This document shows, one piece after another, positions 28,319 to 64,000 of a stretch of DNA of 64,000 bases. Numbering within the stretch: the first letter of the stretch is position 1; each line of letters starts with the position of its first letter. The notes under the pieces are model-generated. The model saw nothing but the letters and a program-made list of their open reading frames with translations, ran no database searches and had not been told where the DNA came from. The position numbers and the translations under genes were made by a program. The DNA is from Tubulanus polymorphus (taxonomy: Eukaryota > Animalia > Nemertea), in assembly GCF_964204645.1 (NCBI RefSeq), contig NC_134036.1, positions 3,906,001 through 3,970,000 of the forward strand, given 5' to 3'.

Positions 28319-31300
28319 TCATTTTCTTCTTTTATTCTTTGCTCGTATGGATTTCATATCGATAGTCAGTATGGTGTAAAGAAGTGGATTGAGGGACGAG
28401 TTTATCGGCAAGAAAAGAACCGCCAGCCAGGCCACCACCTGATTCGGTATTTCTACCCGAAATACCGTGCAAAACTGAACGATTATTAACGGCAGCCAGC
28501 AAAATAGATTACACAGATTTATCACCAAACTCCTACGTGCCAATATTAATTCTGTAGGGTCAATCCTACCAGAGCCAGACCTGCTTCCAGATACGAGTCT
28601 GTACATTTGCGCATAAGTCGACATTATTGTAACAAGTATGACAGAGTTGAACACGGCAAAAATTACGAATGAATATTGCCAGGCGTTGACCTCGATTGTA
28701 ATTAAATTCATAGGTAAACAAACTCCTGTACTGCCATAGAAGTTGTCTCCGAAATAAGATGACTGTGAAAGAGGTATCATAGAAATTGTACCTATGGATA
28801 ACCAACATACGCCACAAATAATGGACACATATTTCGGAGATGTAATCGGGCTTCCAGAAAATGGATTAACGATATTTGAAAATCTGTGTCGCGTTAGAAT
28901 AAGCAGAAAAGACAACGAGCCTTCACAAGAAATCGTCACCACAATTCCAGCGAAACTGCACAATGAACTGTCCGTCCAACTTTCCGAATAAAGAAAATAG
29001 ACTCCTTCATAGAGGTAATCCGCTCCCGCGATCAAAAACAAATAAACCGACATCAGAAAATCACAAGCTGCGATGTTGATGATTAGGATGTCAGAGGATG
29101 TGTTACGCTTTTCGGAGGACGATAGTCGAATTGATCGAAGACGAAATAAAACGACAACACTGTTGGCGAGGAAACTTAATGTGGCGATGACCCAAATGAT
29201 AGCTCTGAGGACTGTGTTGCCCATCAGATCAGAACAGGAGGAAAATTGATCAGCTTCTGGAAGGCACTGATCAACATTTGGTGCCATGCAGCAAAACTTG
29301 TATGCGTTTGATGCGAGAAAAGCCAGAGATGTCAGATTATTGAAAACGCCTTTTCCAACAGAAATAACTTTGGAATTGTTGGTTATATCAAGAAGTCTAA
29401 GTGACTGCAATCCAGAAAATGCATATATAGATATATCACGGATTCTGTTACCGCTGACATTCAGTGACTGTAGTGCGACCAAACCCTTGAAAACATTTTC
29501 TGCAAGGACCGATAGAGATAGTCCATAGAGATCGAGAACTCGAAGCGCCTTCATACCTAAGAAACTGCCTTCTACCAAATAGCTCAATGGATTGCCAGTA
29601 ATGAATAACTGTTCTAAACTATGCAAACCGGTGAACGTATTTTTAGATAAAGATGTTATGTTATTACATGTAAGGTCTAATGTGTGTAGATTATGAAGGT
29701 TTGAAAACGAAGCTGATAATATGTGAGACAATTCATTGAATGAGATATTTAACATACGAAGATATACGAAAGAAGATAAGGTTGATTCGCTTAAACGAAT
29801 TCTATTGCCCGACAAAATCAAAACTCGAGTTGATGCGGAGAAGAGACCAGTGATATTTGATAAACCAGTTTTTCCACAATCGATCGAATAACCTTGACAC
29901 CTGCAATATGTAGGACACGTGACGTTACAGAAAGCCTCGTCATCAGTTGTGTGTTTACAATTTACGAAACCATCACAAACTTCAGATTGTGGAATACACC
30001 GATTTTCCTGACCACATTTAAACATTCCCGGACAAGAAAATGTCTCGCAGTTTTGTTCATCTTCTGAATTAGGACAATCTGATTGACCGTCGCACACCTG
30101 TCTGATCGGTATACAGTAAGACGCAGGACATTTCACAGTGCCAGCTGGACATTCAAATTCTTCACATTTCAAAATGTGCTCAAGATTTCTACAAACTGGG
30201 AAACCATTTGTCATTCTATCTAGAATGCATCTGTGATGTCTTGAATAACAATGTGGAGAATTGAAAGAACATCTTTGTTCATCAGATTTTGTGCAAAGAT
30301 TAGTGAAGTTAGTCGTACAGTGGTTTTCATTGTCGCAGTGAACGGTAGGATTCACAATAACACTAGTTTCTACGAATTCATCTTCTTCAAGACTTCCGCT
30401 ACAATCCACAACACCATCCTGATACAACTGAGAACTGATACAGTCTCCACTGTTACACATGAACCCTTGACACAGTTCAGCAGTGCATCCACTTTCATCG
30501 GAGCCGTCCTTACAATTGAAGATGCCATCACACCTTTTAGATTTACCGACACATTGACCATTTTTACAGCGAAATTGTTCAGACGAACACGGAGGATGAA
30601 AACACGAGTTCTCATCAGAACTATCCACACAATCGTGCATGAAATCACAGAATCCACTTATTGATATAACCTGACCATCATAGCATTGAAACTGACTGTG
30701 CAGATTGATATCCCTACAATTGAGTTCATCTTCACCGTGTTGACAGTCGTGTCTGGTATCACATACGCGATGGTCGCTGATACATCTTTGATCGTTACAT
30801 TTAAACTGCCACAATTTACAACCGCTTATAGAAGCTAACTCTTCGCCAGTTACATTGTAGGAACACAGAACAGAATGCGCTGTATATGTTTGGTTTTCCC
30901 AGGGCATCAATAACCAATCAACCGATTTATTATACGTTATTTCATCTCTGGTAACAAACGGTTTTATTGTCTTCGATTGATTGCTAGAATCCTTAGTTAG
31001 AATAGCGCCATATTGGTGCTGATAACGAAATCTTCCAACCAAATTTTCGACTTCTGTCGCCACCGATATCGCACCTATATCACCGCTGATGCCACGACAC
31101 ATTTCTCTCGCGCTTCCAATATCTAAACTTCGGTTTTTGTCCCAATTTGTCAGTATATGAAAACATCGTCCGGCTATACCTACCCAACCGCGAGTACAGG
31201 TTGCGTTAAACATATTGTTATCAACCTTATCCTCATTCCCAGTCGGAGAAGTTTCGTCATCCGTCCTATTGCTATCTTTTCCAGTTGCATTTTTATCATC

Positions 31301-34300
31301 GTTGATTCTGTCCGTTTCGCACATGAAAGTCGTGTGAACCTCATCAATTCCGCAGGGGAATCGAACCCAGTTCGCCGAACCTCGTGGATTATTCAGTATC
31401 ATCGCCGAACATGGCATATTGACGTCTTGTATTGGTTGTTTTCTCAGGGGAGATATCAATCCTTGAATAACTTCTGGTATCGTTTCGTTGTTACTCGGCG
31501 GCCGGTACCACTCTGTGTAGCTCATCGGTTTCCCATCGGTCCACGTGTAACGACCAGTTGTCAACTGAGAAAATAGAATAAAACATTGTATTATCGGGCA
31601 TATAAAAAACCCACTCAAGTAATAAAGAAATAAAGTACGATTTAGCTAAAGTTGGTTCGACGTTCACGGGCTTTATCGGTAACTATTATACAGGTTCTCT
31701 GACATTTCTACCCAATTCACCATATCTCCATTAACGATTTCTTTTGCCAAACCATATCGATAAGTCCCGTTCTCTACATATTAAAGGTTAGGTTGGGTTT
31801 AAACAATATTTGAAAATATATATTGATTTCCATTGGTAACTAACTGGACTGAGACAAGAGAGGAAATATTGAAAATCTCTTGAAAATCTCTCTTCTCTTT
31901 GTTCTGGATCTCTTAGTTAGTTGTATTGTTGGTCTTATAGATTTTCTTTTTATTGTTTTATAATCATATTTCATTATATATAATGCACCTGTAATTTCAA
32001 GCCGATCATTATTATGAGCGCTTTTCTCGAAAATGCCATCTTCATCAGTCGTCTTACAGCGAATAACGTTTTGATAGCCATCATCTCCTCTTCTGAGTTG
32101 ATACTGAGTAGATTTCCCGCGTACTTCTGTCTACAGTACAATTCAGCATTCTCCCAATTCAGACGTACTTTTCTGATGAATTTCACGCAGGAAAATCCCG
32201 AATCTAAAAGCCCTGCTGATTCGCAGACTCTGTCGCGTTGTTTCGGCATTAGATTCTGTTCTAAGACGTATTGTATGTGAAATCTGGGTATTCTGTTTTT
32301 CACCTCGAGCCACTGCGGTTCTTCCTGCAGACTATAGAATGTAATTCCCGGTACACCGTACGTTTCGCATAGTTTATTCTCGTGACGGGCGTTACTCCTC
32401 TCTTTTCTTCCGTCGTTGTAGATGACCTCCTGCACGAATACGACCGCTTCTGTTTTGTATCGCGATTCTTTGACGCACGGCGCTTCTTCCATATCTTTGA
32501 TAACGAATCGGTAATACTGAATTCGCGCGCGGTTCACCCCGAACCTGACGTTGTATTTCAAAACGACGTCTGAAATGCCAGCCGTTCCCGGGTAGTTCGG
32601 TGACTGCATGACTCCGCAATCGACCACACGACGCTCCGTCCAAATGATGTGTTCGTTGTGCTTTCTCAATCTTTGGCAGGTGCGCCGCAATTCGACGATG
32701 AACGCGAACCTCCAGAAAAAATCGGCCGTGTCGATTTGCACAGTGTAGACAACGCTGTTATTGTTGAGGCGCTGGCTACTGAGCAGGATATATTTTATAC
32801 ATTGCCTGGAATGGTACATAGGGAACAGATGATCGGGCACGTGCGAGCAGATTTCGTATTCGTACGGCGTCAATATGTAAATACTACGAGGCGCAACCTG
32901 TCGGTTTTCGGGCATTATCCTGAAACAGCGCGACGTCACCGTAACCCAGCGCTCTCCTTGTCGCAGAGTGTAGCCGTCACAGTCAGTCGGGCGTAACTTC
33001 AAACTCGCTTTCCTCCGATCGTATACCAACCTCTTGCCCTGACAATTGTATGTGTAGCCAACTACGATAACCGGGCCGCCCGAGGTAATCAGACTGACGA
33101 CGCTGCGTCGATAACCCCACGAACTGGGGCAATACGGACCGTATCGTCTAGCCGTGAAATTACCACCGTCGTATATGTAAAATCCGACGTTTTCGCAATC
33201 AACCGATAACACCCCTAGTTCGAGACTCTGTTCAGTTATTTGGACTTTCCAGGTGAATTCGTACGCGTTTACGTTATATTTCAACGTCCTCGTTGGTGAT
33301 GGAAGCATCGTGAAATATGGCAATGACGCCGGAGCAAGATAGCCGCGTATCTGAAATAAATTCGAAGGAATTAATGAATTCAGTGGCAGTATAATTAAGA
33401 TATCGTCAACCCCTGATATACCGCCAACATCGGTAATCTAGAATTCCAGCGGTATATTGTTAATTTTGACTACTTCTATGACAAAAACACATCACAGAAT
33501 ATACAGCACTGGAAAACCCTGGCTCTACGTGGGGATATTCGGTTTAACATCATTAAAACGAAATCATAGAAATTTGAAATGTGATACGGAATCATTTAGT
33601 TGAGTATTTCGTATTATAACAACTGACTCTAAAGTTGTAAAAGAGGTCGGAACATAATCTATTCGATATTCAATTATTCCGTCAGCTCCTGCCACAACAA
33701 CAAACGCGTTTGCGTTAGCAAACATCAATCGAGACAAAAATAAGTATTCACGCACTTACCGAAGGCTTATGAATGCGAAACTCTGATAATGAAAGCAATT
33801 TCATTCTGAATTCTATTCTCACATTCATATTTGTGATGTTCGGTCTGGTAAGAACGCACAGTGTGACGAGAAATCCTTCAGATTTGAAACTCAGTGATTT
33901 CAGGTAGTTATAACCGAGTAAAATATCAGTTCCTACAACGCGTAACCCTTCTTGTTTATATACACCGATTAAGTCATCGGATGTTACGAGATCACGTGTC
34001 CAGTTGAAGACGACGTACTGTAACACCTGCACTGTGATAGACCAGCAGTGTAAGTGTTTTGATCGAGTTATTACGTGTAAACTGTTGTCATCGGGAATGA
34101 GCACTCCCGAATCGTTATTAGAGACCTGAATCAACGGATTAGAGACGTTCCAATCTGATATTCTGTATATCTGGATTAAAAGCTCAGTCGTTGTCTTGCG
34201 TTGATCCGACACGAAAATGGCGGCTTTATTAGTTTTGGTATAAAACGATGACGGCTGCTGTCCGCTTTGTACGCCTATAAGCGCTATCGGTTCACTGCTG

Positions 34301-34983
34301 ATGTTCCAGCTGTCGTAGATTCGAAAACTCGCCGTTGGATCGACGCCGGCGCCAGGGTATAGTTTCAGGTCCAAATCTACGAATGTGAAATTCATCGCCA
34401 AACCATCCGGGATGTCGATCCATTCGATGAACAACTGACATCGGAAATTAAGGTACATCGCGAATTTGTATCCGGTCGATGTGTTTAACTTATTCACTTT
34501 AAAATACGATCTCCCGCAGCTGTGAGTGATTCTCAATTGGTTTCTTTCGTAACGATATATGATATAAACCCGACTACCTCGCGCACCATCGACGTTACTT
34601 CTAAACATTAATGAGATCGAATCGTTACGAACGATGTCGTATTTTCCGTTACCGCATATGGTCTTCCCGTCGACGAATAGGTAGTTATCGCTGCAGAATA
34701 TTGACAGCTCGATATCGTAGTACGTTTCGACGTGAAAAGTTCCCGGTAAAGAGCTGTTGACGAACCAACGACATTCAACACCGCGCGTTAACGAAGGGTA
34801 ATTCGGCGAAGCGATGTAACCGGACGTAGAATCTAGCGGGTTCCACGTATTGTTACAAGACGAACTTACCGTCACAGACGATTCCTCGATAGAGTCTGCG
34901 CGATCAGCGCGCGCGATGCGAACTTGACAGACGATCAGCGACGCTAACAGCGTTCTCAGTCGCTGCTCCATACCGAACAACAT
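28319..34983 (-). CDS. GRL101: Array copy 1 (exon-3 type A): CUB/C-type lectin/LDLa/LRR GRL101-like GPCR; complement(join(33760..34983,31989..33350,28319..31564)), ~1943 aa
   Basis: Donor TCG|gtaagt at 33760, acceptor tttatttcag at 33350, donor CAG|gtgcat at 31989, acceptor ttttctcag at 31564, all phase 0. CUB (SGYIASPNYP), CTL (IMIGLKLQ|LTTGRYTWTDG), LDLa repeats (CDGQSDCPNSEDE), LRRs, hinge AYKFCC...FSSCSDLM, 7TM ending PINSSLNPLLYT. Confidence 0.85.
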
Positions 34984-36354
34984 CAACACGGTGATGAAAG
35001 ATCAAAATTTCTAAAATCTGTCCGATCAAAAAATACATTACTCTGGTGGAGCCATGAATACTTCAACTACTCGCTTGTCTTGTTTCAAATGAGCGATTTC
35101 GATGCCGGATTTACAGTGAATAAAGAATGAGACTATGCCTCGGATTTCCTCACTATATCGACGACGCCCGCGGGGTATGTATACATCGTGTTTTCCAATG
35201 GAATCCATTCCCTGCGGCATCATTTTTTAGGATATCGTATTTGATTTCCTATTGGATTTCTGACTTTGCTTTTGACTTCGATATACATCTAGGCATACAT
35301 AGATAATATCGACATCTGCTAACAGGTTGGTTTTTGAAATGAAAATTTACTATTTTTTTTTGTAAATTTAGCAAAGTATTGATAACTTGACCTGGAAAAT
35401 TCTAAAACCTCAACATGTTGTCTTATCATTTTAAAATGGAAATGCCTTAAGAAATAAATGCTTTTAGCCCTCCAAAATACCCCTTAATACCCGGCGTCCC
35501 TAAAGATTAATACTTGTACAGTGAAGCCCGCTTCAAATCGGATTACTCCGACTACTAAAAATCCGACCTTAACAGATTTTAATATCAATCTAACCATACC
35601 TTTCGCATCAAATAATTTCTTGTTCGCTTTCTCCCTATCTTTTTTTAAAAAATATATTTCAATCTAAACACCTCTTTCTCGAGACTCTTTTGCCTTAAAA
35701 AATTCCCCAATTATTCTAAAAAATAATAATTCACTATTTTTTGGATCACGAAAAAAAGACGTCTATTTTCAGGATTGAAATATCATCAGGACCTAAAATT
35801 AAATACTTATTTGCTGACGGTAAAAATCTTCTCCGCTGCAGTCATTTTTTTTAAATACACATCAATCTATACACCTCTTTCTCGAGACTCTTTTGGCTTT
35901 AAAAATTTCCCAAATTATTCTACAAAATAATAATTCACTATTTTGGAATCATAAAAAAGACGTCTATTTTCAGGATTCAAATATCATCAGGACCTAAAAC
36001 TAAATACTTATTTGCTGTCGATAGAAATCCTCTTCGCTGCAGTCAAATTCAATCTGCAACAACACGAGGCTGAGCACTCCTATTAGAAATCAATTCGCAT
36101 TATCATTACCATATCTTTAAAATTTATGTAGAGATAAATTCTTGATTGAAGATAAACAACAAACACTAGATATAAGACATTTTATCACTGAACGTTTAAC
36201 AAGTGATCGTCGGCACTTGAGAATCGAGAATGATCAGTAAATACTCGACATTCGGGATTTCACCACAGGAATTTTCGATTGGAGATGAACTACAAACACT
36301 AGATATGTTATAAGACATTTTATCGCCACAGTATTAATGGTTGATCGTCCAAAT

Positions 36355-39130: not shown

Positions 39131-42100
39131 TCATTTTCTTCTTTTATTCTTTGCTCGTATGGATTTCATATCGATAGTCAGTATGGTGTAAAGAAGGGGA
39201 TTGAGGGACGAGTTGATCGGCAAGAAAAGAACCGCCAGCCAAGCCGCCACCTGATTCGGTATTTGTACCCCGAATACGGCGCAAAACTGGACGATAATTA
39301 ACGGCAGCCAGCAAAATAGATTACAGAGATTTATCACCAAACTCCTACGTGCCAAAATCAGTTCGGTAGGGTCGATTCTCCCAGAGCCAGACCTGCTTCC
39401 TGATACGAGTCTGTACATTTGCGCATATGTCCCCATTATTGTAGCAAGTATGACAGAGTTAAACACGGCAAAAATAGCGAATGAATATTGCCAGGCGTTG
39501 ACATCAATGGTGATTAAATTCATAGGTAAACAAACACCGGTAGTGCCGTAGAAATTATCTCCAAAGTAAGGGTAAGGCGCTAGAGGCAGCAATGCAATGC
39601 CACTCAAAACAATCCAACATGTACAGCAAATAATGGACACAAATCTTTGAGATTTCAGGTTTCCGGAAAATGGATTAACGATATTTGAATATCTGTGGCG
39701 CGTCATGATTAATAGAAACGTCAATGAGCCTTCACAAGAGATTGACACAACGACCCCTGCAAGATGACAAAATACACTTCCCGTCCAAGATTCGGAATTA
39801 AGGAAATAGACACCTTTGAAGATGTAATCTGCCCCGGCGATCAGGAACAGATAAACCGACATCATAAAATCGCAGACAGCTACATTGATGATGAGGATAT
39901 CCGAGGATGGATTGGATTTATCAGAAGAAAATCGAATCGCTTGAACGCGAAGAGAAATGACTATTCCGTTGGCGAAAAAGCTGAACGAAGCGATCACCCA
40001 AATGACGGTTCTAAGGACCGTGTTACCCATCAGGTCGGAGCACGACGAGAACGGGTCGGGTTCTGGAAAACATTCATCGACATTGGGTACCATGCAGCAA
40101 AACTTGTAAGCATCTGATCTCAGGGAGACTAATGATGTCAAATTGTCGAAAACGTTTCTGTCGACGGAAACGACTTTCGAGTTTTCGGACAAATCAAGGA
40201 TTTCAAGCGTCGTCAGCCCGGAAAATGCGTAAAGCGAAATACGATCGATTCTGTTAGCGCTGATGTTTAAAGACAGTAAAGCAGAAAGACCCGCAAACGA
40301 GTATTCATAAAGCGTCAGCATTGAAAGTCCGTGAAGGTCGAGAGATTGGAGAGACCTCAAACCTTGGAAACTGCCTTCTTCTAAATAAGTCAGTGGATTT
40401 CGCGTGATGAACAGTTCTTTCAAACTATACAAACCGGCGAACGTGTTGGCGGATAATGACGTTATGGTGTTATGGGTAAGGTCTAATGTATATAGATTAT
40501 GCAGGTTTGAGAATGAGTTCGGTAAGATGTCAGACAAATCGTTGGAGGAGAGATTGAGCATGCGAAGATAGACGTATGGGGAAAATGTTGACGGGTCCAA
40601 GATAATTTGATTTTTCGACAAAATTAAGACTCGAGTTGATGAAGAAAAGAGACCACTTATATTTGTTAAACGAGCATTGTAGCATTCGATCGAATGACCT
40701 TGGCACTGACAGCCTCTAGAGCACGTGGCACTGCAGAAAGCCTCATCATCAGTTGTATGTTTACAATTTACGACACCATTACAAACTTCGGATTGTGGGA
40801 TACATCGATTTTCCTGGCCACATTTAAACATTCCCGGACATGAAAATGTCTCGCAGTTTTCTTCGTCTTCTGAATTAGGACAGTCTGATTGACCATCGCA
40901 CACCTGTCTGATCGGTATACAGTACGATGCTGGACATTTGACAGTGCCAGCTGGACATTCAAATTCTTCACATCTCAATACGTGCTCAAGATTTCTACAA
41001 ACTGGGTAACTATTCAGCAATCTCTCTAGAATACACCTGTGACGTCTTAAATAACAATGAGGAGAATTGAAAGAACATCTTTGTTCATCAGATTCTGTGC
41101 ATAGAGTTGTGAAGTTAGTCGTACATTGGTTTTCATTATCGCAATGAACGGTAGGATTTACCGTAATATTAGTAGCTGCAACTATTTCATCTTCTTCAAG
41201 GCTACCACTACAATCCACGACACCATCCTGATACAACTGAGAACTGATACAGTCTCCACTGTTACACAGGAACCCCTGACACGTTTCAGTGGTGCATCCC
41301 ATTTCATCGGAGTCGTCTTTACAATTAGTGACTGCATTACATCTGTCCGACCTACTAATACATTGACCATTTTCACAGCGAAATTGTTCAGACAAACACG
41401 GGGGATGAAAACACGAGTTCTCATCGGAACCATCCACGCAATCCTGTATGAAATCACAGAATCCACTTATTGATATGACTTGACCATCGTAGCATCTGAA
41501 ATGACCGTGTAAATTGTTAACCGAACAATCGAGTTCATCTTCACCGTGTTGACAGTCGTGTCTGGTATCACATACGCGATGGTCGCTGATACATCTTCGA
41601 TCGTTACATTCAAACTGCCACGATTTACAACCGCTTATAGAAGCCAACTCTTCGCTAGTTACGTTGCATGAACACAAAACAGAATGTGCTTTATCTGTTC
41701 TATTTTCCCAGGGAATCAATAACCAATTAACCGATTTATTGTATGTTATTTCATCTCTGGTAACAACTGGTTTCAGTGTCCTCCATTGATTGTTAGAATC
41801 CTTAGTAAGAATAGCGCCATATTGGTGCTGATAACGAAACCTTCCAACCAAATTTTCGACAACTGTCGCCACCGATATCTCACCTATATCACCGCAGATG
41901 CCACGACACATTTCTCTCGCGCTTCCAATATCTAAACTTCGGTTTTCGTTCCAATTTGTCAGTATTTGAAGACATCGTCCCGCTATACCTACCCAACCTC
42001 GTGTACAGGTTGCGTTGAACATATTGTTATCAACCTTATCCCGATTCCCAGTCGGAGACGTTTCGTTATCCGTCTTATTGCTATCTTTCCCAGTTTTATC

Positions 42101-45100
42101 GATGTTGATTCTGTCCGTTTCGCACATGAAAGTCGTGTGAACCTCGTCGATTTCGCAGGGGAATCGAACCCAGTTCGCTGAACCTCGTGGATTATTCAGT
42201 ATCATCGCTGTACATGGCATATTGACGTCATTTATCGGTTGTTTCCTTACAGCAGATATCAAACCTTGAATAACTTCTGGTATCGTTTCGTTGCTACTCG
42301 GTGTCCGGTACCACTCTGTGTAGCTCATCGGTTTTCCATCGGTCCACGTATAACGACCAGTTGTCAGCTGAGAAAATAGAATAAAATATTGTATCAGTCA
42401 TATAAAAAACCCAAACAACGCTCAATTACCTTCCACCTGCTTCGCTCCCGGAAAGTGCGTTGGGTTTTAAGGGACACAATATCAGATGAAATCTACCAAT
42501 CGAATGATAACGGGGTAAATCGGTATTCTAAGATTTAAAAAATAAACGTAAAAATGCCACGTAAAAATTAATGAATAACGTCCGAAAAGCGATAGTTCGT
42601 TCATAGCACCCCAACTGGTCCTCTTTTCAAAAAAGATATAAATTTCATCATTATTTTGAAAAATAATTGAATTCCATGATCTAATTCAACTGCAGATTGT
42701 CAATACACTCAAAACACGCTCCCACCTCCACTTCTGAATATATTTCGTCATAATATTGACCTCCACTCCCACTGACTAAAAGACTAAAAACTAAACTTTG
42801 CGCAAGCTGCTTTACACGAATCCAAATTATACAGCAAAAATCTTTATTAGCCCAGATGCCTTGTATCTGGTGAGTTAATCATAATTTTCTCCGTTTATCA
42901 ACACCAGCCTGAATTAACTATCTTTCTTATTTAAAGACAAAACTTTTTTGAAATACTTGTAACTATTCGTTTCCGTATTAGTTAAACCTGGTATGTTCAA
43001 ATTCTATACTCATCACCTAATTTATTATCATTATCTCGATGTCGTTATCAATGTTGTCATTATTATAATCGTGGGGGCTTGCACTAGAACCCCCGTATTA
43101 AGTAATCAATTTAAAAAACTCATTGATTGTTCATTTCCTTGTACGAGAAATCTTTCGTAGCTTTTCTCTATTTTGGGTTGTTTCTTAATATTCAATAGAT
43201 TTCATGCACCTGTAATTTCAAACCGATCATTATTATGAGCGCTTTTCTAGAAAATGCCATCTTCATCAGAGGATTTACAGCGAATAACGTTTTGATAGCC
43301 ATCATCTCCTGTTGTGAGTTGATACTGAGTAGATGTCCCGCGTACTTCTGTCTACAATACAATTCAGCATTATCCCAATTCAGACGTACTTTTCTGATGA
43401 ATTTCACGCAGGAAAATCCCGAATCTAAAAGCCCTGCTGATTCGCAGACATTGCCGCGTTGTTTCGGCATTAGATTCTGTTCTAAGACGTATTGTATGCG
43501 AAATCTGGGCATTCTGTTTTTCACCTCGAGCCACAGCGATCTTTCCTGCAGACTATAGAATGTAACTCCCGGTACACCGTACATTTCGCATAGTTTATCC
43601 TCGTGACGGGCGTTACTCCTGTCTTTGCCATATATGACATTGTGGCTGATCTCCTGCACGAATACAACCGCTTCTGTTTTGTATGAAGTTTCTTTGATGC
43701 ACGGCACTTCTTCCATATCTTTGATAACGAAACGGTAATACTGAATTCGCGTGCTGTTCACCCCGAACCCGACGTTGTATTTCAAAACGACGTTGGAACT
43801 GCCGGCCGTTCCCGGGTAGTTCGGCGACTGCACGATCCCGCAATCCACTTCACTTAGCTTCGACCAGTCGATGTATTCGTTGTGCTTTTTCAAGCTTTGG
43901 CAGGTGCGCAGCAATTCAACAATGTAGGCGAATCTCCAGAACAAATCGGCCTTGTTGATTTTGACCGTGTACTTGAAGAGGACACTGCTGCTGCCACTAT
44001 TGTTGCTGGTGTTGAGGCGCTGGCTACTGAGCGGCATGGCGCGTTTACATGTATGGGTAGGGGACATATGATCGGGCACGCACGAGCCGATTTCGTATTC
44101 GTACGGCGTCAATATGTAAATACTACGTGGCGCAACCTGTCGTTTTTCGGGCATAATCCTGAAACAGCGCGACGTCACCGTAACCCGGCGCTCTCCTTGT
44201 CGCAGAGTGTAGCCGTCGCAGTCAGATGGACGTAACATCAATTTCGCTTTCATCCGATCGTAAACCAACCTCTTGCCCTGACAATTGTATGTGTAGCCAA
44301 CTACGATAACCGGGCCGCCCGAGGTAATCAGACTGACGACGCTGCGTCGATAACCCGACGAACTGGGGCAATACGGGCCGTATCGTCTAGCCGTAAAATT
44401 ACCACCGTCGTATATGTAAAATCCGACGTTTTCGCAATCAACCGATAACACCCCTAGTTCGAGCTTCTGTTCAGTTATTTGGACTTTCCAGGTGAATTCG
44501 TACGCGATAACGCGATATTTCAACGTCCTAGTTGGAAATGGAAGCATCGTGTAATATGCCAATGACGCTGAAGCACGATAGCCGCGTATCTGAAATAAAT
44601 TCGAATGAATTAATGAATTCAGTGGCAGTATAATTAAGATATAGTCAACCCCTGATATACCGCCAACATCGGTAATCTAAAATTTCAGCGGTATATTGTT
44701 AATTTTGACTACTTCTATGACAAAAAAACACATAGCACAGAATATACAGCACTGGAAAACCCTGGCTCTACGTGGGGATATTCGGTTTAACATCATTAAT
44801 ACGAAATCATAGAAATTTGAAATGTGATACGGAATCATTATTTAGTTGAGTATTTCGTATTATAACAACTGACTCTAAAGTTGTAAAAGAGGTCGGAACA
44901 TAATTTATTCGATCATTCAATTATTCCGTCAGCTCCTGACACAACAGCAAACACATTTGCGTTATTAAACATCAATCGAGACAAAAATCAGAATTCCCGC
45001 ACTTACCGAAGGCTTATGAATGCGAAACTCTGATAATGAAAGCAATTTCATTCTGAATTCTATTCTTACATTCACATTTTTGATTTTCGGTCTCGTAAGA

Positions 45101-46227
45101 ACGCACAGTATGACGAGAAATCCTTCAGATTTGAGACTCAGTGATTTCAGGTAGTTGTAACCGAGTAAAATATCAGTTCCTACAACGCGTAACCCTTCTT
45201 GTTTATATACACCGATTACGTCATCGGATGTGACGAGATCACGTGTCCAGTTGAAGACGACGTACTGTAACACCTGCACTGTGATAGACCAGCAGTGTAA
45301 GTGTTTTGATCGAGTTATTACGTGTAAACTGCTGTCATTGGGAATGAGCACTCCCGACTTGTTATTAGAGATCTGAATCAACGGATTAGAGACGTTCCAA
45401 TCTGATATTCTGTACATCTGGATTAAAAGCTCAGTCGTTGTCTTGCGTTGATCCGACACGAAAATGGTGGCTTTGTTAGTTTTGGTATAAAACGATGACG
45501 GCTGCTGTCCGCTCTGAACGCCTATAAGCGCTATCGGTTCACTGCTGATGTTCCAGCCATCGTAGATTCGAAAAGTCGCCGCTGGATCAACATCAGGGCC
45601 AGCTCTCACTTGTAGGTCTAAATCTACGAATGTGAAATTCATCGCCACACCATACGGGATGTCGATCCATTCGATGAACAACTGACATCGGAAATTAAGG
45701 TACATCGCGAATTTGTATCCGGTCGATGTGTTTAACTTATTCACTTTAAAATTCCATCTCCCGCTGTGACTGATTCTCAATTGGTTTCTTTCGTAACGAT
45801 ATATGATATAAACCCGACTACCTCGCGCACCAACGACGTTACTTCTAAACATTAATGAGATCGAATCGTTACGAACGATGTCGTATTTTCCGTTACCGCA
45901 TATGGTCTTCCCGTCGACGAATAGGTAGTTATCACTGCAGAATATTGACAGCTCGATATCGTAGTACGTTTCGACGTGAAAAGTTCCCGGTAAAGAGCTG
46001 TTGACGAACCAACGACATTCAACACCGCGCGTTAACGAAGGGTAATTCGGCGAAGCGATGTAACCGGACGTAGAATCTAGCGGGTTCCACGTATTGTTAC
46101 AAGACGAACTTACCGTCACAGACGATTCCTCGATAGAGTCTGCGCGATCAGCGCGCGCGATGCGAACTTGACAGACGATCAGCGACGCTAACAGCGTTCT
46201 CAGTCGCTGCTCCATACCGAACAACAT
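39131..46227 (-). CDS. GRL101: Array copy 2 (exon-3 type B): CUB/C-type lectin/LDLa/LRR GRL101-like GPCR; complement(join(45007..46227,43210..44589,39131..42367)), ~1945 aa
   Basis: Same phase-0 splice sites and domain order as copy 1; all three exons are open. Confidence 0.85.
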
Positions 46228-50192: not shown

Positions 50193-53100
50193 TCATTTTC
50201 TTCTTTTATTCTTTGCTCGTATGGATTTCATATCGATAGTCAGTATGGTGTAAAGAAGGGGATTGAGGGACGAGTTGATCGGCAAGAAAAGAACCGCCAG
50301 CCAAGCCGCCACCTGATTCGGTATTTTTACCCCGAATACGGCGCAAAACTGGACGATAATTAACGGCAACCAGCAAAATAAATTACAAAGATTGATCACC
50401 AAACTCCTACGTGCCAGAATCAGTTCTGTAGGGTCGATTCTCCCAGAGCCAGACCTGCTTCCAGATACGAGTCTGTACATTTGCGCATATGTCCCCATTA
50501 TTGTAGCAAGTATGACAGAGTTAAACACGGCAAAAATAGCGAATGAATATTGCCAGGCGTTGACATCAATGGTGATTAAATTCATAGGTAAACAAACACC
50601 GGTAGTGCCGTAGAAATTATCTCCAAAGTAAGGGTAAGGCGCTAGAGGCAGCAATGCAATGCCACTCAAAACAATCCAACATGTACAGCAAATAATGGAC
50701 ACAAATCTTTGAGATTTCAGGTTTCCAGAAAATGGATTAACGATATTTGAATATCTGTGGCGCGTCATGATTAATAGAAACGTCAATGACCCTTCACAAG
50801 AGATTGACACAACGACCCCTGCAAGATGACAAAATACACTTCCCGTCCAAGATTCGGAATTAAGGAAATAGAAACCTTTGAAGATGTAATCTGCCCCGGC
50901 GATCAGGAATAGATAAACCGACATCATAAAATCGCAGACAGCTACATTGATGATGAGGATATCCGAGGATGGATTGGATTTATCAGAAGAAAATCGAATC
51001 GCTTGAACGCGAAGAGAAATGACTATTCCGTTAGCGAAAAAGCTGAACGAAGCGATCACCCAAATGACGGTTCTGAGGACCGTGTTACCCATCAGGTCTG
51101 AACAAGAGGAGAACGGGTCGGGTTTTGGAAAACATTCATCGACATTGGGTACCATGCAGCAAAACTTGTAAGCATCTGATCTCAGGGAGACTAATGATGT
51201 CAAATTGTCGAAAACGTTTCTGTCGACGGAAACGACTTTCGAGTTTTCGGACAAATCAAGGATTTCAAGCGTCGTCAGCCCGGAAAATGCGTAAAGCGAA
51301 ATACGATCGATTCTGTTAGCGCTGATGTTTAAAGACAGTAAAGCAGAAAGACCCGCAAACGAGTATTCATAAAGCGACAGCATTGAAAGTCCGTGAAGGT
51401 CGAGAGATTGGAGAGACCTCAAACCTTGGAAACTGCCTTCTTCTAAATAAGTCAGTGGATTTCTTGTGATGAACAGTTCTTTCAAACTATACAAACCGGC
51501 GAACGTGTTTGCGGATAATGACGTAATGGTGTTATGGGTAAGGTCTAATGTATATAGATTATGTAGGTTTGAGAATGAGTTCGGTAAAATGTGAGACAAT
51601 TCGTTGGAGGAGAGGTTGAGCATGCGAAGATAGACGTATGGGGAAAATGTTGACGGGTCCAAGATAATTTGATTTTTCGACAAAATTAAGACTCGAGTTG
51701 ATGTAGAAAAGAGACCACTTATATTTGTTAAACGAACATTGTAGCATTCGATCGAATGACCTTGGCACTGACAGCCTCTAGAGCACGTGGCACTGCAGAA
51801 AGCCTCATCATCAGTTGTATGTTTACAATTTACGACACCATTACAAACTTCGGATTGTGGGATACATCGATTTTCCTGGCCACATTTAAACATTCCCGGA
51901 CATGAAAATGTCTCGCAGTTTTCTTCGTCTTCTGAATTAGGACAATCTGATTGACCATCGCACACCTGGCTGATCGGTATACAGTACGATGCTGGACATT
52001 TGACAGTGCCAGCTGGACATTCAAATTCTTCACATCTCAATACGTGCTCAAGATTTCTACAAACTGGGTAACCATTCAGCAATCTCTCTAGAATACACCT
52101 GTGACGTCTTAAATAACAATGAGGAGAATTGAAAGAACATCTTTGTTCATCAGATTCTGTGCATAGAGTTGTGAAGTTAGTCGTACATTGGTTTTCATTA
52201 TCGCAATGAACGGTTGGATTTACCGTAATATTAGTAGCTGCAACTATTTCATCTTCTTCAAGGCTACCACTACAATCCACGACACCATCCTGATACAACT
52301 GAGAACTGATACAGTCTCCACTGTTACACAGGAACCCCTGACACGGTTCAGTGGTGCATCCCATTTCATCGGAGTCGTCTTTACAATTAGTGACTGCATT
52401 ACATCTGTTCGACCTACTAATACATTGACCATTTTCACAGCGAAATTGTTCAGACAAACACGGGGGATGAAAACACGAGTTCTCATCGGAACCATCCACG
52501 CAATCCTGTATGAAATCACAGAATCCACTTATTGATATGACTTGACCATCGTAGCATCTGAAATGACCGTGTAAATTGTTAACCGAACAATCGAGTTCAT
52601 CTTCACCGTGTTGACAGTCGTGTCTGGTATCACATACGCGATGGTCGCTGATACATCTTCGATCGTTACATTCAAACTGCCACGATTTACAACCGCTTAT
52701 AGAAGCTAACTCTTCGCTAGTTACGTTGCATGAACACAAAACAGAATGTGCTTTATCTGTTCTATTTTCCCAGGGAATCAATAACCAATTAACCGATTTA
52801 TTGTATGTTATTTCATCTCTGGTAACAACTGGTTTCAGTGTCCTCCATTGATTGTTAGAACCCTTAGTAAGAATAGCGCCATATTGGTGCTGATAACGAA
52901 ACCTTCCAACCAAATTTTCGACATCTGTCGCCACCGATATCTCACCTATATCACCGCAGATGCCACGACACATTTCTCTCGCGCTTCCAAAATCTAAACT
53001 TCGGTTTTCGTTCCAATTTGTCAGTATTTGAAGACATCGTCCGGCTATACCTACCCAACCTCGTGTACAGGTTGCGTTGAACATATTGTTATCAACCTTA

Positions 53101-56100
53101 TCCCGATTCCCAGTCGGAGACGTTTCGTTATCCGTCTTATTGCTATCTTTCCCAGTTTTATCGATGTTGATTCTGTCCGTTTCGCACATGAAAGTCGTGT
53201 GAACCTCGTCGATTTTGCAGGGGAATCGAACCCAGTTCGCCGAACCTCGCGGATTATTCAGTATCATCGCTGTACACGGCATATTGACGTCATTTATCGG
53301 TTGTTTCCTTACAGCAGATATCAAACCTTGAATAACTTCTGGTATCGTTTCGTTGCTACTCGGTGTCCGGTACCACTCTGTGTAGCTCATCGGTTTTCCA
53401 TCGGTCCACGTATAACGACCAGTTGTCAGCTGAGAAAATAGAATAAAATATTGTATCAGTCATATAAAAAACCCAAACAACGCTCAATTACCTTCCACCT
53501 GCTTCGCTCCCGGAAAGTGCGTTGGGTTTTAAGGGACACAATATCAGATGAAATCTACCAATCGAATGATAACGGGGTAAATCGGTATTCTAAGATTTAA
53601 AAAATACACGTAAAAATGCCACGTAAAAATTAATGAATAACGTCCGAAAAGCGATAGTTCGTTCATAGCACCCCAACTGGTCCTCTTTTCAAAAAAGATA
53701 TAAATTTCATCATTATTTTGAAAAATAATTGAATTCCATGATCTAATTCAACTGCAGATTGTCAATACACTCAAAACACGCTCCCACCTCCACTTCTGAA
53801 TATATTTCGTCATAATATTGACCTCCACTCCCACTGACTAAAAGACTAAAAACTAAACTTTGCGCAAGCTGCTTTACACGAATCCAAATTATACAGCAAA
53901 AATCTTTATTAGCCCAGATGCCTTGTATCTGGTGAGTTAATCATTATTTTCTCCGTTTATCAACACCAGCCTGAATTAACTATCTTTCTTATTTAAAGAC
54001 AAAACTTTTTTGAAATACTTGTAACTATTCGTTTCCGTATTAGTTAAACCTGGTATGTGTTATTATATTTTCAAATTCTATACTCATCACCTAATTTATT
54101 ATCGTTATCTCGATGTCGTTATCAATGTTGTCATTATAATAATCGTGGGGGCTTGCACTAGAACCCCCGTATTAAGTAATCAATTAAAAACTCTTATTGA
54201 TTGTTCATTTCCTTATACGAGAAATATTTCGTAGCTTTTCTCTATATTCTCTAATATTCAATAGATTTAATGCACCTGTAATTTCAAACCGATCATTATT
54301 ATGAGCGCTTTTCTAGAAAATGCCATCTTCATCAGAGGATTTACAGCGAATAACGTTTTGATAGCCATCATCTCCTGTTGTGAGTTGATACTGAGTAGAT
54401 GTCCCGCGTACTTCTGTCTACAGTACAATTCAGCTTTCTCCCAATTCAGACGTACTTTTCTGATGAATTTCACGCAGGAAAATCCCGAATCTAAAAGCCC
54501 TGCTGATTCGCAGACATTGCCGCGTTGTTTCGGCATTAGATTCTGTTCTAAGACGTATTGTACGCGAAATCTGGGCATTCTGTTTTTCACCTCGATCCAC
54601 AGCGATCTTTCCTGCAGACTATAGAATGTAACTCCCGGTACACCGTACATTTCGCATAGTTTATCCTCGTGACGGGCGTTACTACTGTCTTTGCCATATA
54701 TGGCATTGTGGCTGATCTCCTGCACGAATACAACCGCTTCTGTTTTGTATCGCGATTCTTTGATGCACGGCACTTCTTCCATATCTTTGATAACGAAACG
54801 GTAATACTGAATTCGCGTACTGTTCAGCGTGAACCCGACGTTGTATTTCAAGACGACGTTGGAACTGCCGGCCGTTCCCGGGTAGTTCGGCGACTGCACG
54901 ATCCCGCAATCCACTTCACCTCGCTTCATCGTGTCGATGTGATCGCTGTGCTTTCTCAAGCTTTGGCAGGTGCGCTGCAATTCAACAATGTAGGCGAATC
55001 TCCAGAACAAATCGGCCTTGTTGATTTTGACCGTGTACTTGAAGAGGACACTGCTGCTGCCACTGTTGTTGCTGGTGTTGAGACGCTGGCTAGTGAGCGG
55101 CATGGCGCGTTTACATGTATGGGTAGGGGACATATGATCGGGCACGCACGAGCCGATTTCGTATTCGTACGGCGTCAATATGTAAATACTACGTGGCGCA
55201 ACCTGTCGTTTTTCGGGCATAATCCTGAAACAGCGCGACGTCACCGTAACCCGGCGCTCTCCTTGTCGCAGAGTGTAGCCGTCGCAGTCAGATGGACGTA
55301 ACATCAATTTCGCTTTCCTCCGATCGTAAACCAACCTCTTGCCCTGACAATTGTATGTGTAGCCAACTACGATAACCGGGCCGCCCGAGGTAATCAGACT
55401 GACGACGCTGCGTCGATAACCCGACGAATTGGGGCAATACGGGCCGTATCGTCTAGCCGTGAAATTACCACCGTCGTATATGTAAAATCCGACGTTTTCG
55501 CAATCAACCGATAACACCCCTAGTTCGAGACTCTGTTCAGTTATTTGGACTTTCCAGGTGAATTCGTACGCGTTTACGTTATATTTCAACGTCCTAGTTG
55601 GAAATGGAAGCATCATGTAATATGCCAATGGCGCTGAAGCAAGATAGCCGCGTATCTGAAATAAATTCGAAGGAATTAATGAATTCAGTGGCAGTATAAT
55701 TAAGATATGGTCGACCCCTGATATACCGCCAACATCGGTAATCTAAAATTTCAGCGGTATATTGTTAATTTTGACTACTTTTATGACAAAAAACACAAAG
55801 CACAGAATATACAGCACTGGAAAACCCTGGCTCTACGTGGGGATATTCGGTTTAACATCATTAATACGAAATCATAGAAATTTGAAATGTGATACGGAAT
55901 CATTTAGTTGAGTATTTCGTATTATAACAACTGACTCTAAAGTTGTAAAAGAGGTCGGAACATAATCTATTCGATCATTCAATTATTCCGTCAGCTCCTG
56001 CCACAACAACAAACACATTTGTGTTAGTAAACATCAATCGAGACAAAAATCAGTATTCCCGCACTTACCGAAGGCTTATGAATGCGAAACTCTGATAATG

Positions 56101-57295
56101 AAAGCAATTTCATTCTGAATTCTATTCTTACATTCATATTTGTGATGTTCGGTCTGGTAAGAACGCACAGTATGACGAGAAATCCTTCAGATTTGAGACT
56201 CAGTGATTTCAGGTAGTTGTAACCGAGTAGAATATCAGTTCCTACAACGCGTAACCCTTCTTGTTTATAAACACCGATGACGTCATCGGATGTGACGAGA
56301 TCACGTGTCCACTTGAAGACGACATACTGTAACACCTGCACTGTGATAGACCAGCAGTGTAAGTCTTTTGATCGAGTTATTACGTGTAAACTGTTGTCAT
56401 CTGGAATGAGCACTCCCGACTCGTTATTATAGATCTGAATCAACGGATTAGAGACGTTCCAATCCGATATTCTGTACATCTGGATTAAAAGCTCAGTCGT
56501 TGTCCTGCGTTGATCCGACACGAAAATTGTGGCTTTTTTCGTTTTGGTATAAAACGATGACGGCTGCTGTCCGCTTTGAACACCTATAAGCGCTATCGGT
56601 TCACTGCTGATGTTCCAGCCATCGTAGATTCGAAAACTCGCCGCTGGATCGACACCGGCACCAGGGTATAGTATCAGGTCCAGATCTACGAATGTGAAAT
56701 TCATCGCCAAACCATACGGGATGTCGGTCCATTCGATGAACAACTGACATCGGAAATTAAGGAACATTGAGAATTTGTATCCGGTCGATGTTTTTAACTT
56801 ATTCACTTTAAAAAACGATCTCCCGCAGCTGTGAGTGATTCTCAATTGACTTCTTTCGTAACGATATATAATATAAACCCGACTACCTCGAGCACCATCG
56901 ACGTTACTTCTAAACATCAACGAGAGCGAATCGTTACGAACGATGTCGTATTTTCCGTTACCGCAAATGGTCTTCCCGTCGACGAATAGGTAGTTATCAT
57001 TGCAGAATATTGACAGTTCGATATCGTAGTACGTTTCGACGTGAAAAATTCCCGGTAAAGAGCTGTTGACGAACCAACGACATTCAACACCGCGCGTTAA
57101 CGAAGGGTAATTCGGTGAAACGATGTAACCGGACGTTGAATCTAGCGGGTACCACGTGTTGTTACAAGACGAACTTACCGTCACAGACGATTCCTCGATA
57201 GAGTCTGCGCGATCAGCGAGCGCGATGCGAACTCGACAGACGATCAGTGTCGTTATGAACAGCGCTCTTAGTCGCTGCTCCATACGGAATAACAT
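50193..57295 (-). CDS. GRL101: Array copy 3 (exon-3 type B): CUB/C-type lectin/LDLa/LRR GRL101-like GPCR; complement(join(56069..57295,54276..55655,50193..53429)), ~1947 aa
   Basis: Same phase-0 splice sites and domain order; exon 3 and intron 2 are nearly identical to copy 2. Confidence 0.85.
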
Positions 57296-60898: not shown

Positions 60899-60963
60899 GC
60901 GCATATGTCCCCATTAAACACGGCAAAAATAGCGAATGAATATGGGCGTTGACATCAATGGTG
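60899..60963 (-). pseudogene. 65-bp relic of a type-B receptor exon 3 (TM5 region) in intergenic DNA
   Basis: gcgcatatgtccccatta|aacacggcaaaaatagcgaatgaatat..ggcgttgacatcaatggtg matches 39421-39512 with two small deletions. Confidence 0.75.
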
Positions 60964-61894: not shown

Positions 61895-64000
61895 TCATTT
61901 TCTTCTTTTATTCTTTGCTCGTATGGATTTCATATCGATAGTCAGTATGGTGTAAAGAAGGGGATTGAGGGACGAGTTGATCGGTAAGAAAAGAACCGCC
62001 AGCCAAGCCGCCACCTGATTCGGTATTTCTACCCGAAATACCGTGCAAAATTGAACGGTTATTAACGGCAGCCAGCAAAATGAATTGCAAAGATTTATCA
62101 CCAAACTCCTACGTGCCAATATTAATTCTGTAGGGTCAATTCTACCAGAGCCAGACCTGCTTCCAGATACGAGTCTGTACATTTGCGCATAAGTCGACAT
62201 TATTGTAACAAGTATGACAGAGTTGAACACGGCAAAAATTACGAATGAATATTGCCAGGCGTTGACCTCGATTGTAATTAAATTCATAGGTAAACAAACT
62301 CCTGTACTGCCATAGAAGTTGTCTCCGAAATAAGATGACTGTGAAAGAGGTATCATAGAAATTGTACCTATGGATAACCAACATACGCCACAAATAATGG
62401 ACACATATTTCGGAGATGTAATCGGGCTTCCAGAAAATGGATTAACGATATTTGAAAATCTGTGTCGCGTTAGAATAAGCAGAAAAGACAACGAGCCTTC
62501 ACAAGAAATCGTCACCACAATTCCAGCGAAACTGCACAATGAACTGTCCGTCCAACTTTCCGAATAAAGAAAATAGACTCCTTCATAGAGGTAATCCGCT
62601 CCCGCGATCAAAAACAAATAAACCGACATCAGAAAATCACAAGCTGCGATGTTGATGATTAGGATGTCAGAGGATGTGTTACGCTTTTCGGAGGACGATA
62701 GTCGAATTGATCGAAGACGAAATAAAACGACAACACTGTTGGCGAGGAAACTTAATGTGGCGATGACCCAAATGATAGCTCTGAGGACTGTGTTGCCCAT
62801 CAGATCAGAACAGGAGGAAAATTGATCAGCTTCTGGAAGGCACTGATCAACATTTGGTGCCATGCAGCAAAACTTGTATGCGTTTGATGCGAGAAAAGCC
62901 AGAGATGTCAGATTATTGAAAACGCCTTTTCCAACAGAAATAACTTTGGAATTGTTGGTTATATCAAGAAGTCTAAGTGACTGCAATCCAGAAAATGCAT
63001 ATATAGATATATCACGGATTCTGTTACCGCTGACATTCAGTGACTGTAGTGCGACCAAACCCTTGAAAACATTTTCTGCAAGGACCGATAGAGATAGTCC
63101 ATAGAGATTGAGAACTCGAAGCGCCTTCATACCTAAGAAACTGCCTTCTACCAAATAGCTCAATGGATTGCCAGTAATGAATAACTGTTCTAAACTATGC
63201 AAACCGGTGAACGTATTTTTAGATAAAGATGTTATGTTATTACATGTAAGGTCTAATGTGTGTAGATTATGAAGGTTGGAAAACGAAGCTGATAATATGT
63301 GAGACAATTCATTGAATGAGATGTTTAGCATACGAAGATATACGAAAGAAGATAAGGTTGACTCGCTCAAACGAATTCTATTGTCCGACAAAATCAAAAC
63401 TCGAGTTGATGCGGAGAAGAGACCAGTGATATTTGTTAAACCAGTTTTTCTACAATCGATCGAATGACCTTGACACCTGCAATCTGTAGGACACGTGACT
63501 TCACAGAAAGCCTCGTCATCAGTTGTGTGTTTACAATTTACGAAACCATCACAAACTTCAGATTGTGGAATACACCGATTTTCCTGACCACATTTAAACA
63601 TTCCCGGACAAGAAAATATCTCGCAGTTTTGTTCATCTTCTGAATTAGGACAATCTGATTGACCGTCGCATACCTGTCTGATCGGTATACAGTAAGACGC
63701 TGGACATTTCACAGTACCAGCTGGACATTCAAATTCTTCACATTTCAAAATGTGCTCAAGATTTCTACAAACTGGGAAACCATTTGTCATTCTATCTAGA
63801 ATGCATCTGTGATGTCTTAAATAACAATGTGGAGAATTGAAAGAACATCTCTGTTCATCAGATTTTATGCAGAAATTTGTGAAGTTAGTCATACAGTAGT
63901 TTTCATTGTCGCAGTGAACAGTAGGATTCACTGTAACATTAGAAGTTGTTACTAATTCATCTTCCTCAAGGCTTCCACTACAATCCACGACACCATCCTG
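61895..64000 (-). CDS. GRL101: Array copy 4 (exon-3 type A), partial: LDLa-LRR-7TM part of a GRL101-like GPCR; continues beyond the window
   Basis: Open frame to the window edge, nearly identical to copy 1 exon 3; 3' flank ~60970-61895 is homologous to ~27385-28319. Confidence 0.88.
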   Translation of the reverse strand, partial: QDGVVDCSGSLEEDELVTTSNVTVNPTVHCDNENYCMTNFTNFCIKSDEQRCSFNSPHCYLRHHRCILDRMTNGFPVCRNLEHILKCEEFECPAGTVKCPASYCIPIRQVCDGQSDCPNSEDEQNCEIFSCPGMFKCGQENRCIPQSEVCDGFVNCKHTTDDEAFCEVTCPTDCRCQGHSIDCRKTGLTNITGLFSASTRVLILSDNRIRLSESTLSSFVYLRMLNISFNELSHILSASFSNLHNLHTLDLTCNNITSLSKNTFTGLHSLEQLFITGNPLSYLVEGSFLGMKALRVLNLYGLSLSVLAENVFKGLVALQSLNVSGNRIRDISIYAFSGLQSLRLLDITNNSKVISVGKGVFNNLTSLAFLASNAYKFCCMAPNVDQCLPEADQFSSCSDLMGNTVLRAIIWVIATLSFLANSVVVLFRLRSIRLSSSEKRNTSSDILIINIAACDFLMSVYLFLIAGADYLYEGVYFLYSESWTDSSLCSFAGIVVTISCEGSLSFLLILTRHRFSNIVNPFSGSPITSPKYVSIICGVCWLSIGTISMIPLSQSSYFGDNFYGSTGVCLPMNLITIEVNAWQYSFVIFAVFNSVILVTIMSTYAQMYRLVSGSRSGSGRIDPTELILARRSLVINLCNSFCWLPLITVQFCTVFRVEIPNQVAAWLAVLFLPINSSLNPLLYTILTIDMKSIRAKNKRRK

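Follow-up and report, generated by a model that had tools for sequence, protein, structure and literature searches.

What do the long open reading frames (ORFs) that recur on one strand of a nemertean chromosome encode: a group of smaller genes repeated several times, or a single very large receptor, and in the latter case a receptor of what kind? This question is raised by a stretch of 64,000 nucleotides from Tubulanus polymorphus (positions 3,906,001 to 3,970,000 of contig NC_134036.1, RefSeq assembly GCF_964204645.1), the whole of which is called the window hereafter, with coordinates counted from its first letter. Between 27.4 and 64 kb, the ORF list and a comparison of the window with itself reveal four units on the minus strand, three of them complete and one cut off, arranged head-to-tail in steps of ~11 kb, that is, three and a half units in 36.6 kb. 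We consider it probable that the array of tandem copies ending in this region consists of intact genes with three exons each, that these genes encode surface receptors of ~1,945 residues in which CUB, lectin-like, LDLa and LRR modules precede a seven-transmembrane (7TM) region of the RXFP1 type, and that the receptors form a diversified sensor repertoire.

Each unit comprises three long ORFs on the minus strand, those of unit 1 lying at 28319-31618, 31974-33323 and 33748-34989. As self-comparison found no additional copy or fragment of the unit in positions 1-27,400, the window holds one end of an array that continues beyond position 64,000. This low-coordinate end is marked by the 3' flank of unit 1 (27433..28318, minus strand), a 95.5% match to the 3' flank of unit 4. 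Unit 2 occupies 39131..46227, unit 3 occupies 50193..57295, and unit 4 (61895..64000) is represented by its exon 3, its 5' part lying beyond the window end; all three are on the minus strand. The spacer upstream of exon 1 belongs to the array unit as well, and contains a 201-bp unit repeated 1.9 times, at 35659-36045 in unit 1 and at 46902-47289 in unit 2.

A sequence-only reading of this DNA had proposed that conserved phase-0 GT/AG sites splice the three ORFs of each unit into one protein of ~1,945 residues, and the comparison of units bears this out. Indeed, the junctions are identical in all three complete units, canonical and both in phase 0 (donor 1 CG|GTAAGT, acceptor 1 TTTCAG|ATA, donor 2 CAG|GTGCAT, acceptor 2 TCTCAG|T/CTG). 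In unit 1, exon 1 (33760..34983, 408 codons) starts at the first in-frame ATG and is followed, on the same minus strand, by intron 1 (33351..33759, 409 nt), exon 2 (31989..33350, 454 codons) and intron 2 (31565..31988, 424 nt); with the 1081 codons of exon 3, the protein amounts to 1,943 codons. Unit 2 has exons at 46227-45007, 44589-43210 and 42367-39134, with the stop codon at 39131-39133 (407+460+1078 = 1,945 codons), and unit 3 has exons at 57295-56069, 55655-54276 and 53429-50196, with the stop codon at 50193-50195 (409+460+1078 = 1,947 codons). Both introns begin with GT and end with AG, at sites kept in units 2 and 3, and intron 2 measures 842 nt in unit 2 and 846 nt in unit 3.

The same structure is found outside the window. 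The closest database proteins, labelled 'GRL101-like' or 'uncharacterized', are themselves from T. polymorphus and are encoded on chromosome OZ123234.1 (GCA_964204645.2), on which two other loci (L001 and L002) hold three further complete paralogues, one of them with a broken exon 3, plus fragments. Both loci display the same three long ORFs (~418, 450 and 1,099 codons), and the RefSeq products at L001 10001-13375 and L002 10001-12340 (~2.80 and 3.05 Mb) measure 689 and 525 residues, so that the public models of these two paralogues appear to miss most of the ectodomain. At L001 18612-21913, a paralogue's exon 3 is spread over two overlapping ORFs (a frameshift or an assembly error), and 3' fragments of further copies lie at L001 3-1797 and 3938-4513; some members of the family thus seem to be decaying. 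A search with the 1,108-residue exon 3 ORF among proteins of up to 1,939 residues returned no full-length public model of the window genes.

The strongest evidence that the three ORFs form one gene comes from the C-type lectin (CTL) domain that their joining was claimed to rebuild. For this domain we built a profile from 49 Lectin_C domains of related receptors; this profile, like all domain, profile and fold tests reported here, was run exon by exon, not on the spliced protein. In unit 1 the end of exon 2 (aa 397-451) matches profile positions 2-49 (independent E-value, i-E, 7.8e-9), and the start of exon 3 (31316..31558, aa 3-83, minus strand) matches positions 55-121 (i-E 1.5e-17). The two exons therefore carry complementary halves of one domain on either side of intron 2, as the splice model predicts. 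Pfam detects Lectin_C positions 2-34 alone, on exon 2 (E 1e-3), and has no match on the exon 3 half. In an amphioxus relative (P0007) with a Lectin_C domain at 910-1025, the end of exon 2 aligns with residues 899-942 and residue 4 of exon 3 with residue 966, leaving a gap of 24 residues, exactly as the splice model expects.

An intron inside the lectin domain is also present in a distant homologue (L003, ~31% identity) located at 3573-6836 and 8001-11297 of ENA contig ctg31892l of ERZ25069853, in which the end of one ORF matches profile positions 2-52 and the start of the next one positions 55-116. Since this homologue carries the same split, the position of the intron within the lectin domain is old. 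Its CUB modules and the N-terminal lectin half share one ORF of 1,087 codons, which continues into TA-rich simple sequence, and the C-terminal lectin half, LDLa, LRR and 7TM follow in the next ORF; intron 1 is absent from it (exons 1 and 2 being fused) and the lectin intron is kept. Within T. polymorphus, the RefSeq model of a paralogue (P0174) begins MTIGLKWK|NDGYYTWTDG, a join that spans the homologous GT...AG intron of locus L001.

These results bear directly on the possibility that the three ORFs are independent genes, two of them encoding secreted proteins, one with CUB and the other with CUB and lectin modules, and the third a conventional G-protein-coupled receptor (GPCR) of the LDLa-LRR kind. 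Such a reading would be in line with the separate listing of the ORFs and with the RefSeq models of two paralogues (689 and 525 residues), which cover only parts of exon 3. However, each lectin half is incomplete alone and the halves stand on different ORFs; exons 2 and 3 begin at acceptor sites, with no ATG where homology starts; splice sites and phase are conserved; and homologues carry all modules in one protein, the paralogue model P0174 itself spanning the exon 2/3 junction. Contradicted by the split lectin domain, the conserved junctions and the single-protein homologues, the independent-gene reading was rejected, and we leave it next to no probability.

The spliced protein ends in a core that is recognized without difficulty. 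On exon 3 of unit 1 (minus strand throughout), an LDLa block (29921..30823, ~aa 248-548; Ldl_recept_a E 7.3e-35, 5 stretches) is followed by an LRRNT, 7-8 LRRs and the Cys-containing hinge FSSCSDLM (29210..29920, ~aa 549-785; LRR_8 5e-26, LRR_4 2.6e-13), and then by a 7TM region of the rhodopsin class and the stop codon (28319..29209, ~aa 786-1081; 7tm_1 2.6e-20). The succession of LRRNT, about seven to eight LRRs, hinge and 7TM described earlier is accordingly recovered by the LRR_8 and 7tm_1 matches, the repeats themselves being read from the alignment. Of the roughly seven LDLa modules claimed, five are canonical and found by Pfam, and the remaining Cys-rich ones, which would bring the total to about seven, are seen by eye only. 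The LRR ectodomain matches LGR4, LGR5 and RXFP1, and the 7TM region taken alone is much closer to RXFP1 (1e-39) than to LHCGR (9e-19) or to TSHR and FSHR (both ~2e-16). Among solved structures, human RXFP1 (PDB 7TMW) is the best match of the combined LRR and 7TM parts (1.3e-75). With a 7TM closest to RXFP1, an LRR ectodomain and multiple LDLa modules, the proteins qualify as type C (LDLa-containing), GRL101-like LRR-containing GPCRs (LGRs), as had been proposed. Their 7TM micro-switches D2.50, R3.50, CWLP and NPLLY are kept and the tail beyond helix 8 is very short, and the DRY site at the end of transmembrane helix 3 (TM3) reads HRF in units 1-4 (~28880-28890 in unit 1).

The N-terminal part is far more diverged. 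For the CUB modules, a profile was built from 87 instances in related receptors. In unit 1, exon 1 would begin with a probable signal peptide (~aa 1-26), judged from the sequence and a predicted N-terminal helix, and continues with two CUB modules (~aa 43-150, i-E 1e-5; ~aa 169-264, i-E 6.5e-3) and a weak third CUB-like stretch (~aa 292-400, i-E 0.43). Exon 2 contains two CUB-like stretches, one weak (~aa 20-118) and one marginal (~aa 244-365), with i-E 0.03 and 0.15 for the two. Over the units, i-E values are ~1e-5 and 1e-4 to 1e-2 for the exon 1 modules and 0.02-0.2 for those of exon 2, and the Pfam CUB model reaches 20.2 bits on exon 1 (E 8e-4), just under its cut-off of 21.4. Thus, of the approximately five CUB modules previously announced, support extends to the two of exon 1, whereas one in exon 2 is marginal and the remaining two lack significance. 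Between the two CUB-like stretches of exon 2, the alignment displays a variable, indel-rich stretch (~aa 165-240), and exon 2 of unit 1 is colinear with residues 112-383 of a Macrostomum protein (P0036). Neighbours in a language-model comparison belong to CUB and CUB+lectin clusters, those of CUB lying at 0.90-0.92.

Structure prediction was of little help for these modules: the AlphaFold models of exon 1 (pLDDT 38) and exon 2 (pLDDT 31), calculated from alignments of six and eight rows, are poor or unusable, and although CUB pairs of C1r/C1s, PCPE-1 and MASP rank first when the low-confidence model of exon 1 is compared by Foldseek, TM-scores do not exceed 0.31 and this ranking deserves little weight. 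In the alignment, the lectin-like domain reads PPS at the place of the sugar-binding EPN/QPD motif (RPPSNNE versus the consensus GEPNN), with WVR replacing WND; as judged from this alignment, it is a predicted lectin-like fold without the canonical sugar site. A second, degenerate CTL-like domain had been proposed between the lectin domain and the LDLa block, and this was not confirmed: the Cys-containing stretch concerned (30830..31207, minus strand, exon 3 ~aa 120-245) gives i-E 0.16 with the CTL profile and no Pfam match. The equivalent stretch of the distant homologue L003 reaches i-E 0.004 with the same profile. Overall, the proposed order of signal peptide, CUB, lectin-like domain, LDLa, LRR and 7TM holds.

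Are these large genes intact and under selection, or are they young pseudogenes in silent or decaying duplicated DNA that still look whole? All copies are open over their full length, with an open frame of ~5.8 kb each in the 3.6 copies of the window. For exon 3, the ratio of nonsynonymous to synonymous substitution rates (dN/dS) is 0.15-0.26 in every pair. It is 0.30-0.56 for exon 1. For exon 2, unit 1 gives 0.63-0.67 when compared with units 2 and 3, which give 1.18 when compared with each other. These last two units differ by nonsynonymous and synonymous changes numbering 34:8 in exon 2, compared with 16:30 in exon 3 (Fisher p = 1.4e-5). When a paralogue from a different locus is used for comparison, exon 1 has a protein identity of 61% and a dN/dS of 0.30, exon 2 has 47% and 0.25, and exon 3 has 72% and 0.16. 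All copies are therefore under purifying selection, and the outer modules evolve faster while being constrained on average. Decay would be consistent with the run search, which returned no RNA run containing the stretch, and with the L001 paralogue whose exon 3 is broken and which has fragments nearby. Yet 3.6 copies keep frames of ~5.8 kb and conserved splice sites, and exon 3 retains a dN/dS of 0.15-0.26 even between sequence types separated by a dS of 0.57 overall, and by a dS above 1 in the block from the LRRs to TM4. An array of pseudogenes was rejected on account of the open frames, the purifying selection and the conserved splice sites, and we regard it as very unlikely.

These two exon 3 types reveal that the copies are mosaics. 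Units 2 and 3 are 96.5% identical at the DNA level, and the 5' parts of all units are 93-94% alike, but for exon 3 of unit 1 the identity is 95.5% with unit 4 and just 83% with units 2 and 3. Accordingly, units 1 and 4 carry a type A exon 3 (97% protein identity between the two) and units 2 and 3 a type B exon 3. Intron 2 is where the homogenised 5' part gives way to an exon 3 that has diverged further. Between A and B, dS is 0.06-0.15 in exons 1-2, 0.2-0.37 in the lectin, LDLa and TM5-TM7 parts, and 1.2-1.5 in the block formed by the LRRs, the hinge and TM1-4. This pattern fits two old variants of the LRR-TM4 block, kept in copies that are otherwise homogenised by recombination or gene conversion. 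It is conceivable, though we would not favour it, that the CUB-lectin-LGR family is the main diversified repertoire of this worm, chemosensory or immune, and that recombination in or close to the conserved introns reshuffles old, discrete blocks, of which the two LRR-TM4 variants would be an example, among tandem copies that are homogenised elsewhere. If this were true, diversity would arise from germline exchange of blocks on a GPCR scaffold, a mechanism and a receptor class undescribed for Nemertea.

In two DNA sequencing runs, 1,427 and 812 contigs are at least 90% alike over 5.9 kb of unit 1, far above what four copies would lead to expect, and the tandem units together with the paralogues at two other loci of OZ123234.1 agree with the earlier description of a locally expanding family. 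We then considered how widespread the architecture is. Among 127 related proteins with a near-complete 7TM region, 44 carry CUB and lectin modules upstream and another 18 a lectin module only. The named ones belong to Ptychodera, Saccoglossus, Glandiceps, Acanthaster, Diadema, Branchiostoma, Lingula, Lineus, Macrostomum and Tubulanus, and are mostly labelled 'uncharacterized' or 'GRL101-like'. The reservation that similar architectures might exist as unstudied predictions was thus well founded, as they are common among predictions from hemichordates, echinoderms, amphioxus, Lingula, Lineus and Macrostomum. The worm's combination of modules is therefore not unique, and, with the published snail precedents discussed below, it is less novel than had been implied.

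In a FastTree phylogeny of 120 7TM regions, which is unrooted, moderately supported at its deep nodes and devoid of Lymnaea GRL101, the window genes group in a clade restricted to the species, at the end of a long stem. This clade lies inside a group of 44 rows with proteins of Lineus, Macrostomum and Lingula, and outside a clade of 12 rows that contains the canonical GRL101-like proteins of Antedon, Panonychus and Lycorma.

From these elements, a route from ligand to G protein can be proposed. The proteins would be surface receptors whose variable outer modules (the CUB stack, the lectin-like domain and the LRR surface) may bind extracellular ligands, and the signal would pass through LDLa and hinge to the 7TM core and on to G proteins, as in RXFP1. 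The activation of RXFP1 requires its LDLa module. The family as a whole would act as a diversified sensor repertoire, an interpretation favoured by the tandem, many-copy organization and by the combination of fast outer modules with a slow core.

The resemblance to RXFP1 also suggests a different role, namely that of classical endocrine receptors which, like RXFP1/2 and insect LGR3/4, would recognize endogenous insulin/relaxin-like or IGF-like (insulin-like growth factor) peptides through their LRRs and LDLa modules, the copies being redundant. The 7TM and LRR parts are indeed closest to RXFP1, the core is under strong purifying selection, and an IGF-receptor role has been proposed for GRL101 (bioRxiv 10.1101/2021.04.15.440029). 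Against this, the ambulacrarians studied have a single copy of the canonical GRL101 orthologue, such orthologues possess neither CUB nor lectin modules, the window clade falls outside the canonical GRL101-like clade of the unrooted tree, and tandem many-copy arrays with faster outer modules suit a repertoire of ligands better than a single hormone. A role as hormone receptors is consequently less likely, and we hold the endocrine explanation to be improbable.

Several observations nonetheless weigh against a diversified array of sensor genes, and have to be set against the evidence above. Besides the failure of the run search to find an RNA run containing the stretch, which leaves comparative evidence only for splicing and expression, the two runs that match it (X1 and X2) look like DNA, with contigs inside introns and no joints at the predicted junctions, and a third run guessed to be RNA (X3) has no matches. 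Gene-wide positive selection was found neither among the units nor against the paralogue in the dN/dS comparisons. On the protein side, the lectin-like domain is devoid of sugar-binding motifs, the poor AlphaFold models leave the greater part of the first 850 residues with no fold assigned confidently, and a search among proteins of 224-714 residues, a length range that may miss full-length relatives, detected no relative of exon 1 outside the species. Finally, the His at position 3.49, part of the HRF motif, is shared with only 2 of 116 related receptors, 108 of which have D, E or N at this position; judging from the sequence, this His could change basal activity or coupling.

The remainder of the window contains features of another nature. 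An intronless ORF of 360 codons at 2839-3921 (minus strand; 7tm_1 E 4.5e-9) corresponds to a small orphan GPCR gene unrelated to the array. A Ser/Thr-rich, mucin-like ORF of 340 codons with no Pfam match lies at 13954-14976 on the same strand, and includes, at 14129-14509, 30-nt tandem units that encode 10-residue SESSTKTSPV-like repeats. Two 60-bp repeat arrays, at 884-1164 and 13646-13903, lie ~12.5 kb apart and have consensus units that are reverse complements of each other when compared by eye; a large mobile element enclosing the small GPCR ORF may have these arrays as its inverted ends. A 66-bp tandem repeat (11.6 copies, 94% matches) is located at 16684-17446.

How do these receptors compare with known systems? 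Those of the GRL101 type are orphans whose numbers have increased independently in several lineages of invertebrates, and in snails they have been linked to chemosensation and parasite resistance. The nemertean version in the window is well preserved, and no other in the series has so large an ectodomain. Since its architecture and its pattern of expansion have published or database precedents, no new category is called for. Even so, the correct three-exon model would enable a census of the family, selection analysis and expression studies, and both the block-wise mosaic and the His in the DRY motif lend themselves to concrete tests. In the literature, we found neither a described family of CUB-containing LGRs nor a nemertean family.

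Human RXFP1 shares with the worm proteins the LRR and 7TM parts and the position of LDLa N-terminal to the LRRs. It has one LDLa, ten LRRs, a DRY-type motif and relaxin as its ligand, whereas in the worm proteins LDLa modules are several, LRRs number 7-8, the DRY site reads HRF and a large additional ectodomain is present. With Lymnaea stagnalis GRL101 and the type C2 LGRs (arthropod LGR5, crinoid GRL101), the worm proteins have in common LDLa repeats, LRRs and a relaxin-receptor-like 7TM of the rhodopsin class; 'GRL101-like' is also the label given by NCBI to the window paralogues. Compared with GRL101, the window proteins add ~950 residues before the LDLa block (CUB and CUB-like modules, the lectin-like domain and the Cys-containing stretch), possess 5-7 LDLa modules instead of 12, and are many-copy instead of single-copy. 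They also differ from the canonical GRL101-like receptors in standing outside their clade in the unrooted 7TM tree.

Two families of snail receptors offer parallels for the expansion itself. In Biomphalaria sudanica, a 12-gene cluster of GRL101-like receptors with CTL, LDL and LRR modules lies at a schistosome-resistance locus, and its lectin domain has been proposed to present ligands to the GPCR in an immune-recognition role (PMC12297450). As far as descriptions can be compared, this SudRes2 cluster resembles the window in its tandem paralogues with a C-type lectin-like domain, LDL repeat(s), LRR and 7TM. It differs in that no CUB stack is described for its genes, and in that its link to parasite resistance was obtained by a genome-wide association study, whereas the worm array is known from sequence alone. 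In apple snails (Ampullariidae), 29-132 GRL101 genes are arranged in tandem clusters and are highly expressed in cephalic tentacles and labial palps (PMC6573481); as far as their description as 'GRL101' genes goes, this is a lineage-specific tandem burst like that of the window, in another phylum. Tentacle-specific or sensory expression of GRL101-type receptors is also known from Charonia and Acanthaster. By analogy with the snail data, a chemosensory role would be somewhat more likely than an immune one for the worm receptors.

Architectural counterparts are also found among uncharacterised predictions. According to Pfam, a single polypeptide with the same module order (CUB, Lectin_C, Ldl_recept_a, LRR_8 and 7tm_1) is present, for instance, in Ptychodera flava XP_070539486.1, Acanthaster XP_022083821.1, Lingula XP_013411505.1, Tubulanus XP_074645996.1 and the amphioxus proteins of ~2,200 aa annotated as 'RXFP1' or GRL101-like. 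These CUB-lectin relatives are only 29-43% identical to the window proteins over exon 3, and EGF, SRCR or kinase-like parts are added in some. They have canonical CUB domains, whereas those of the window are highly diverged.

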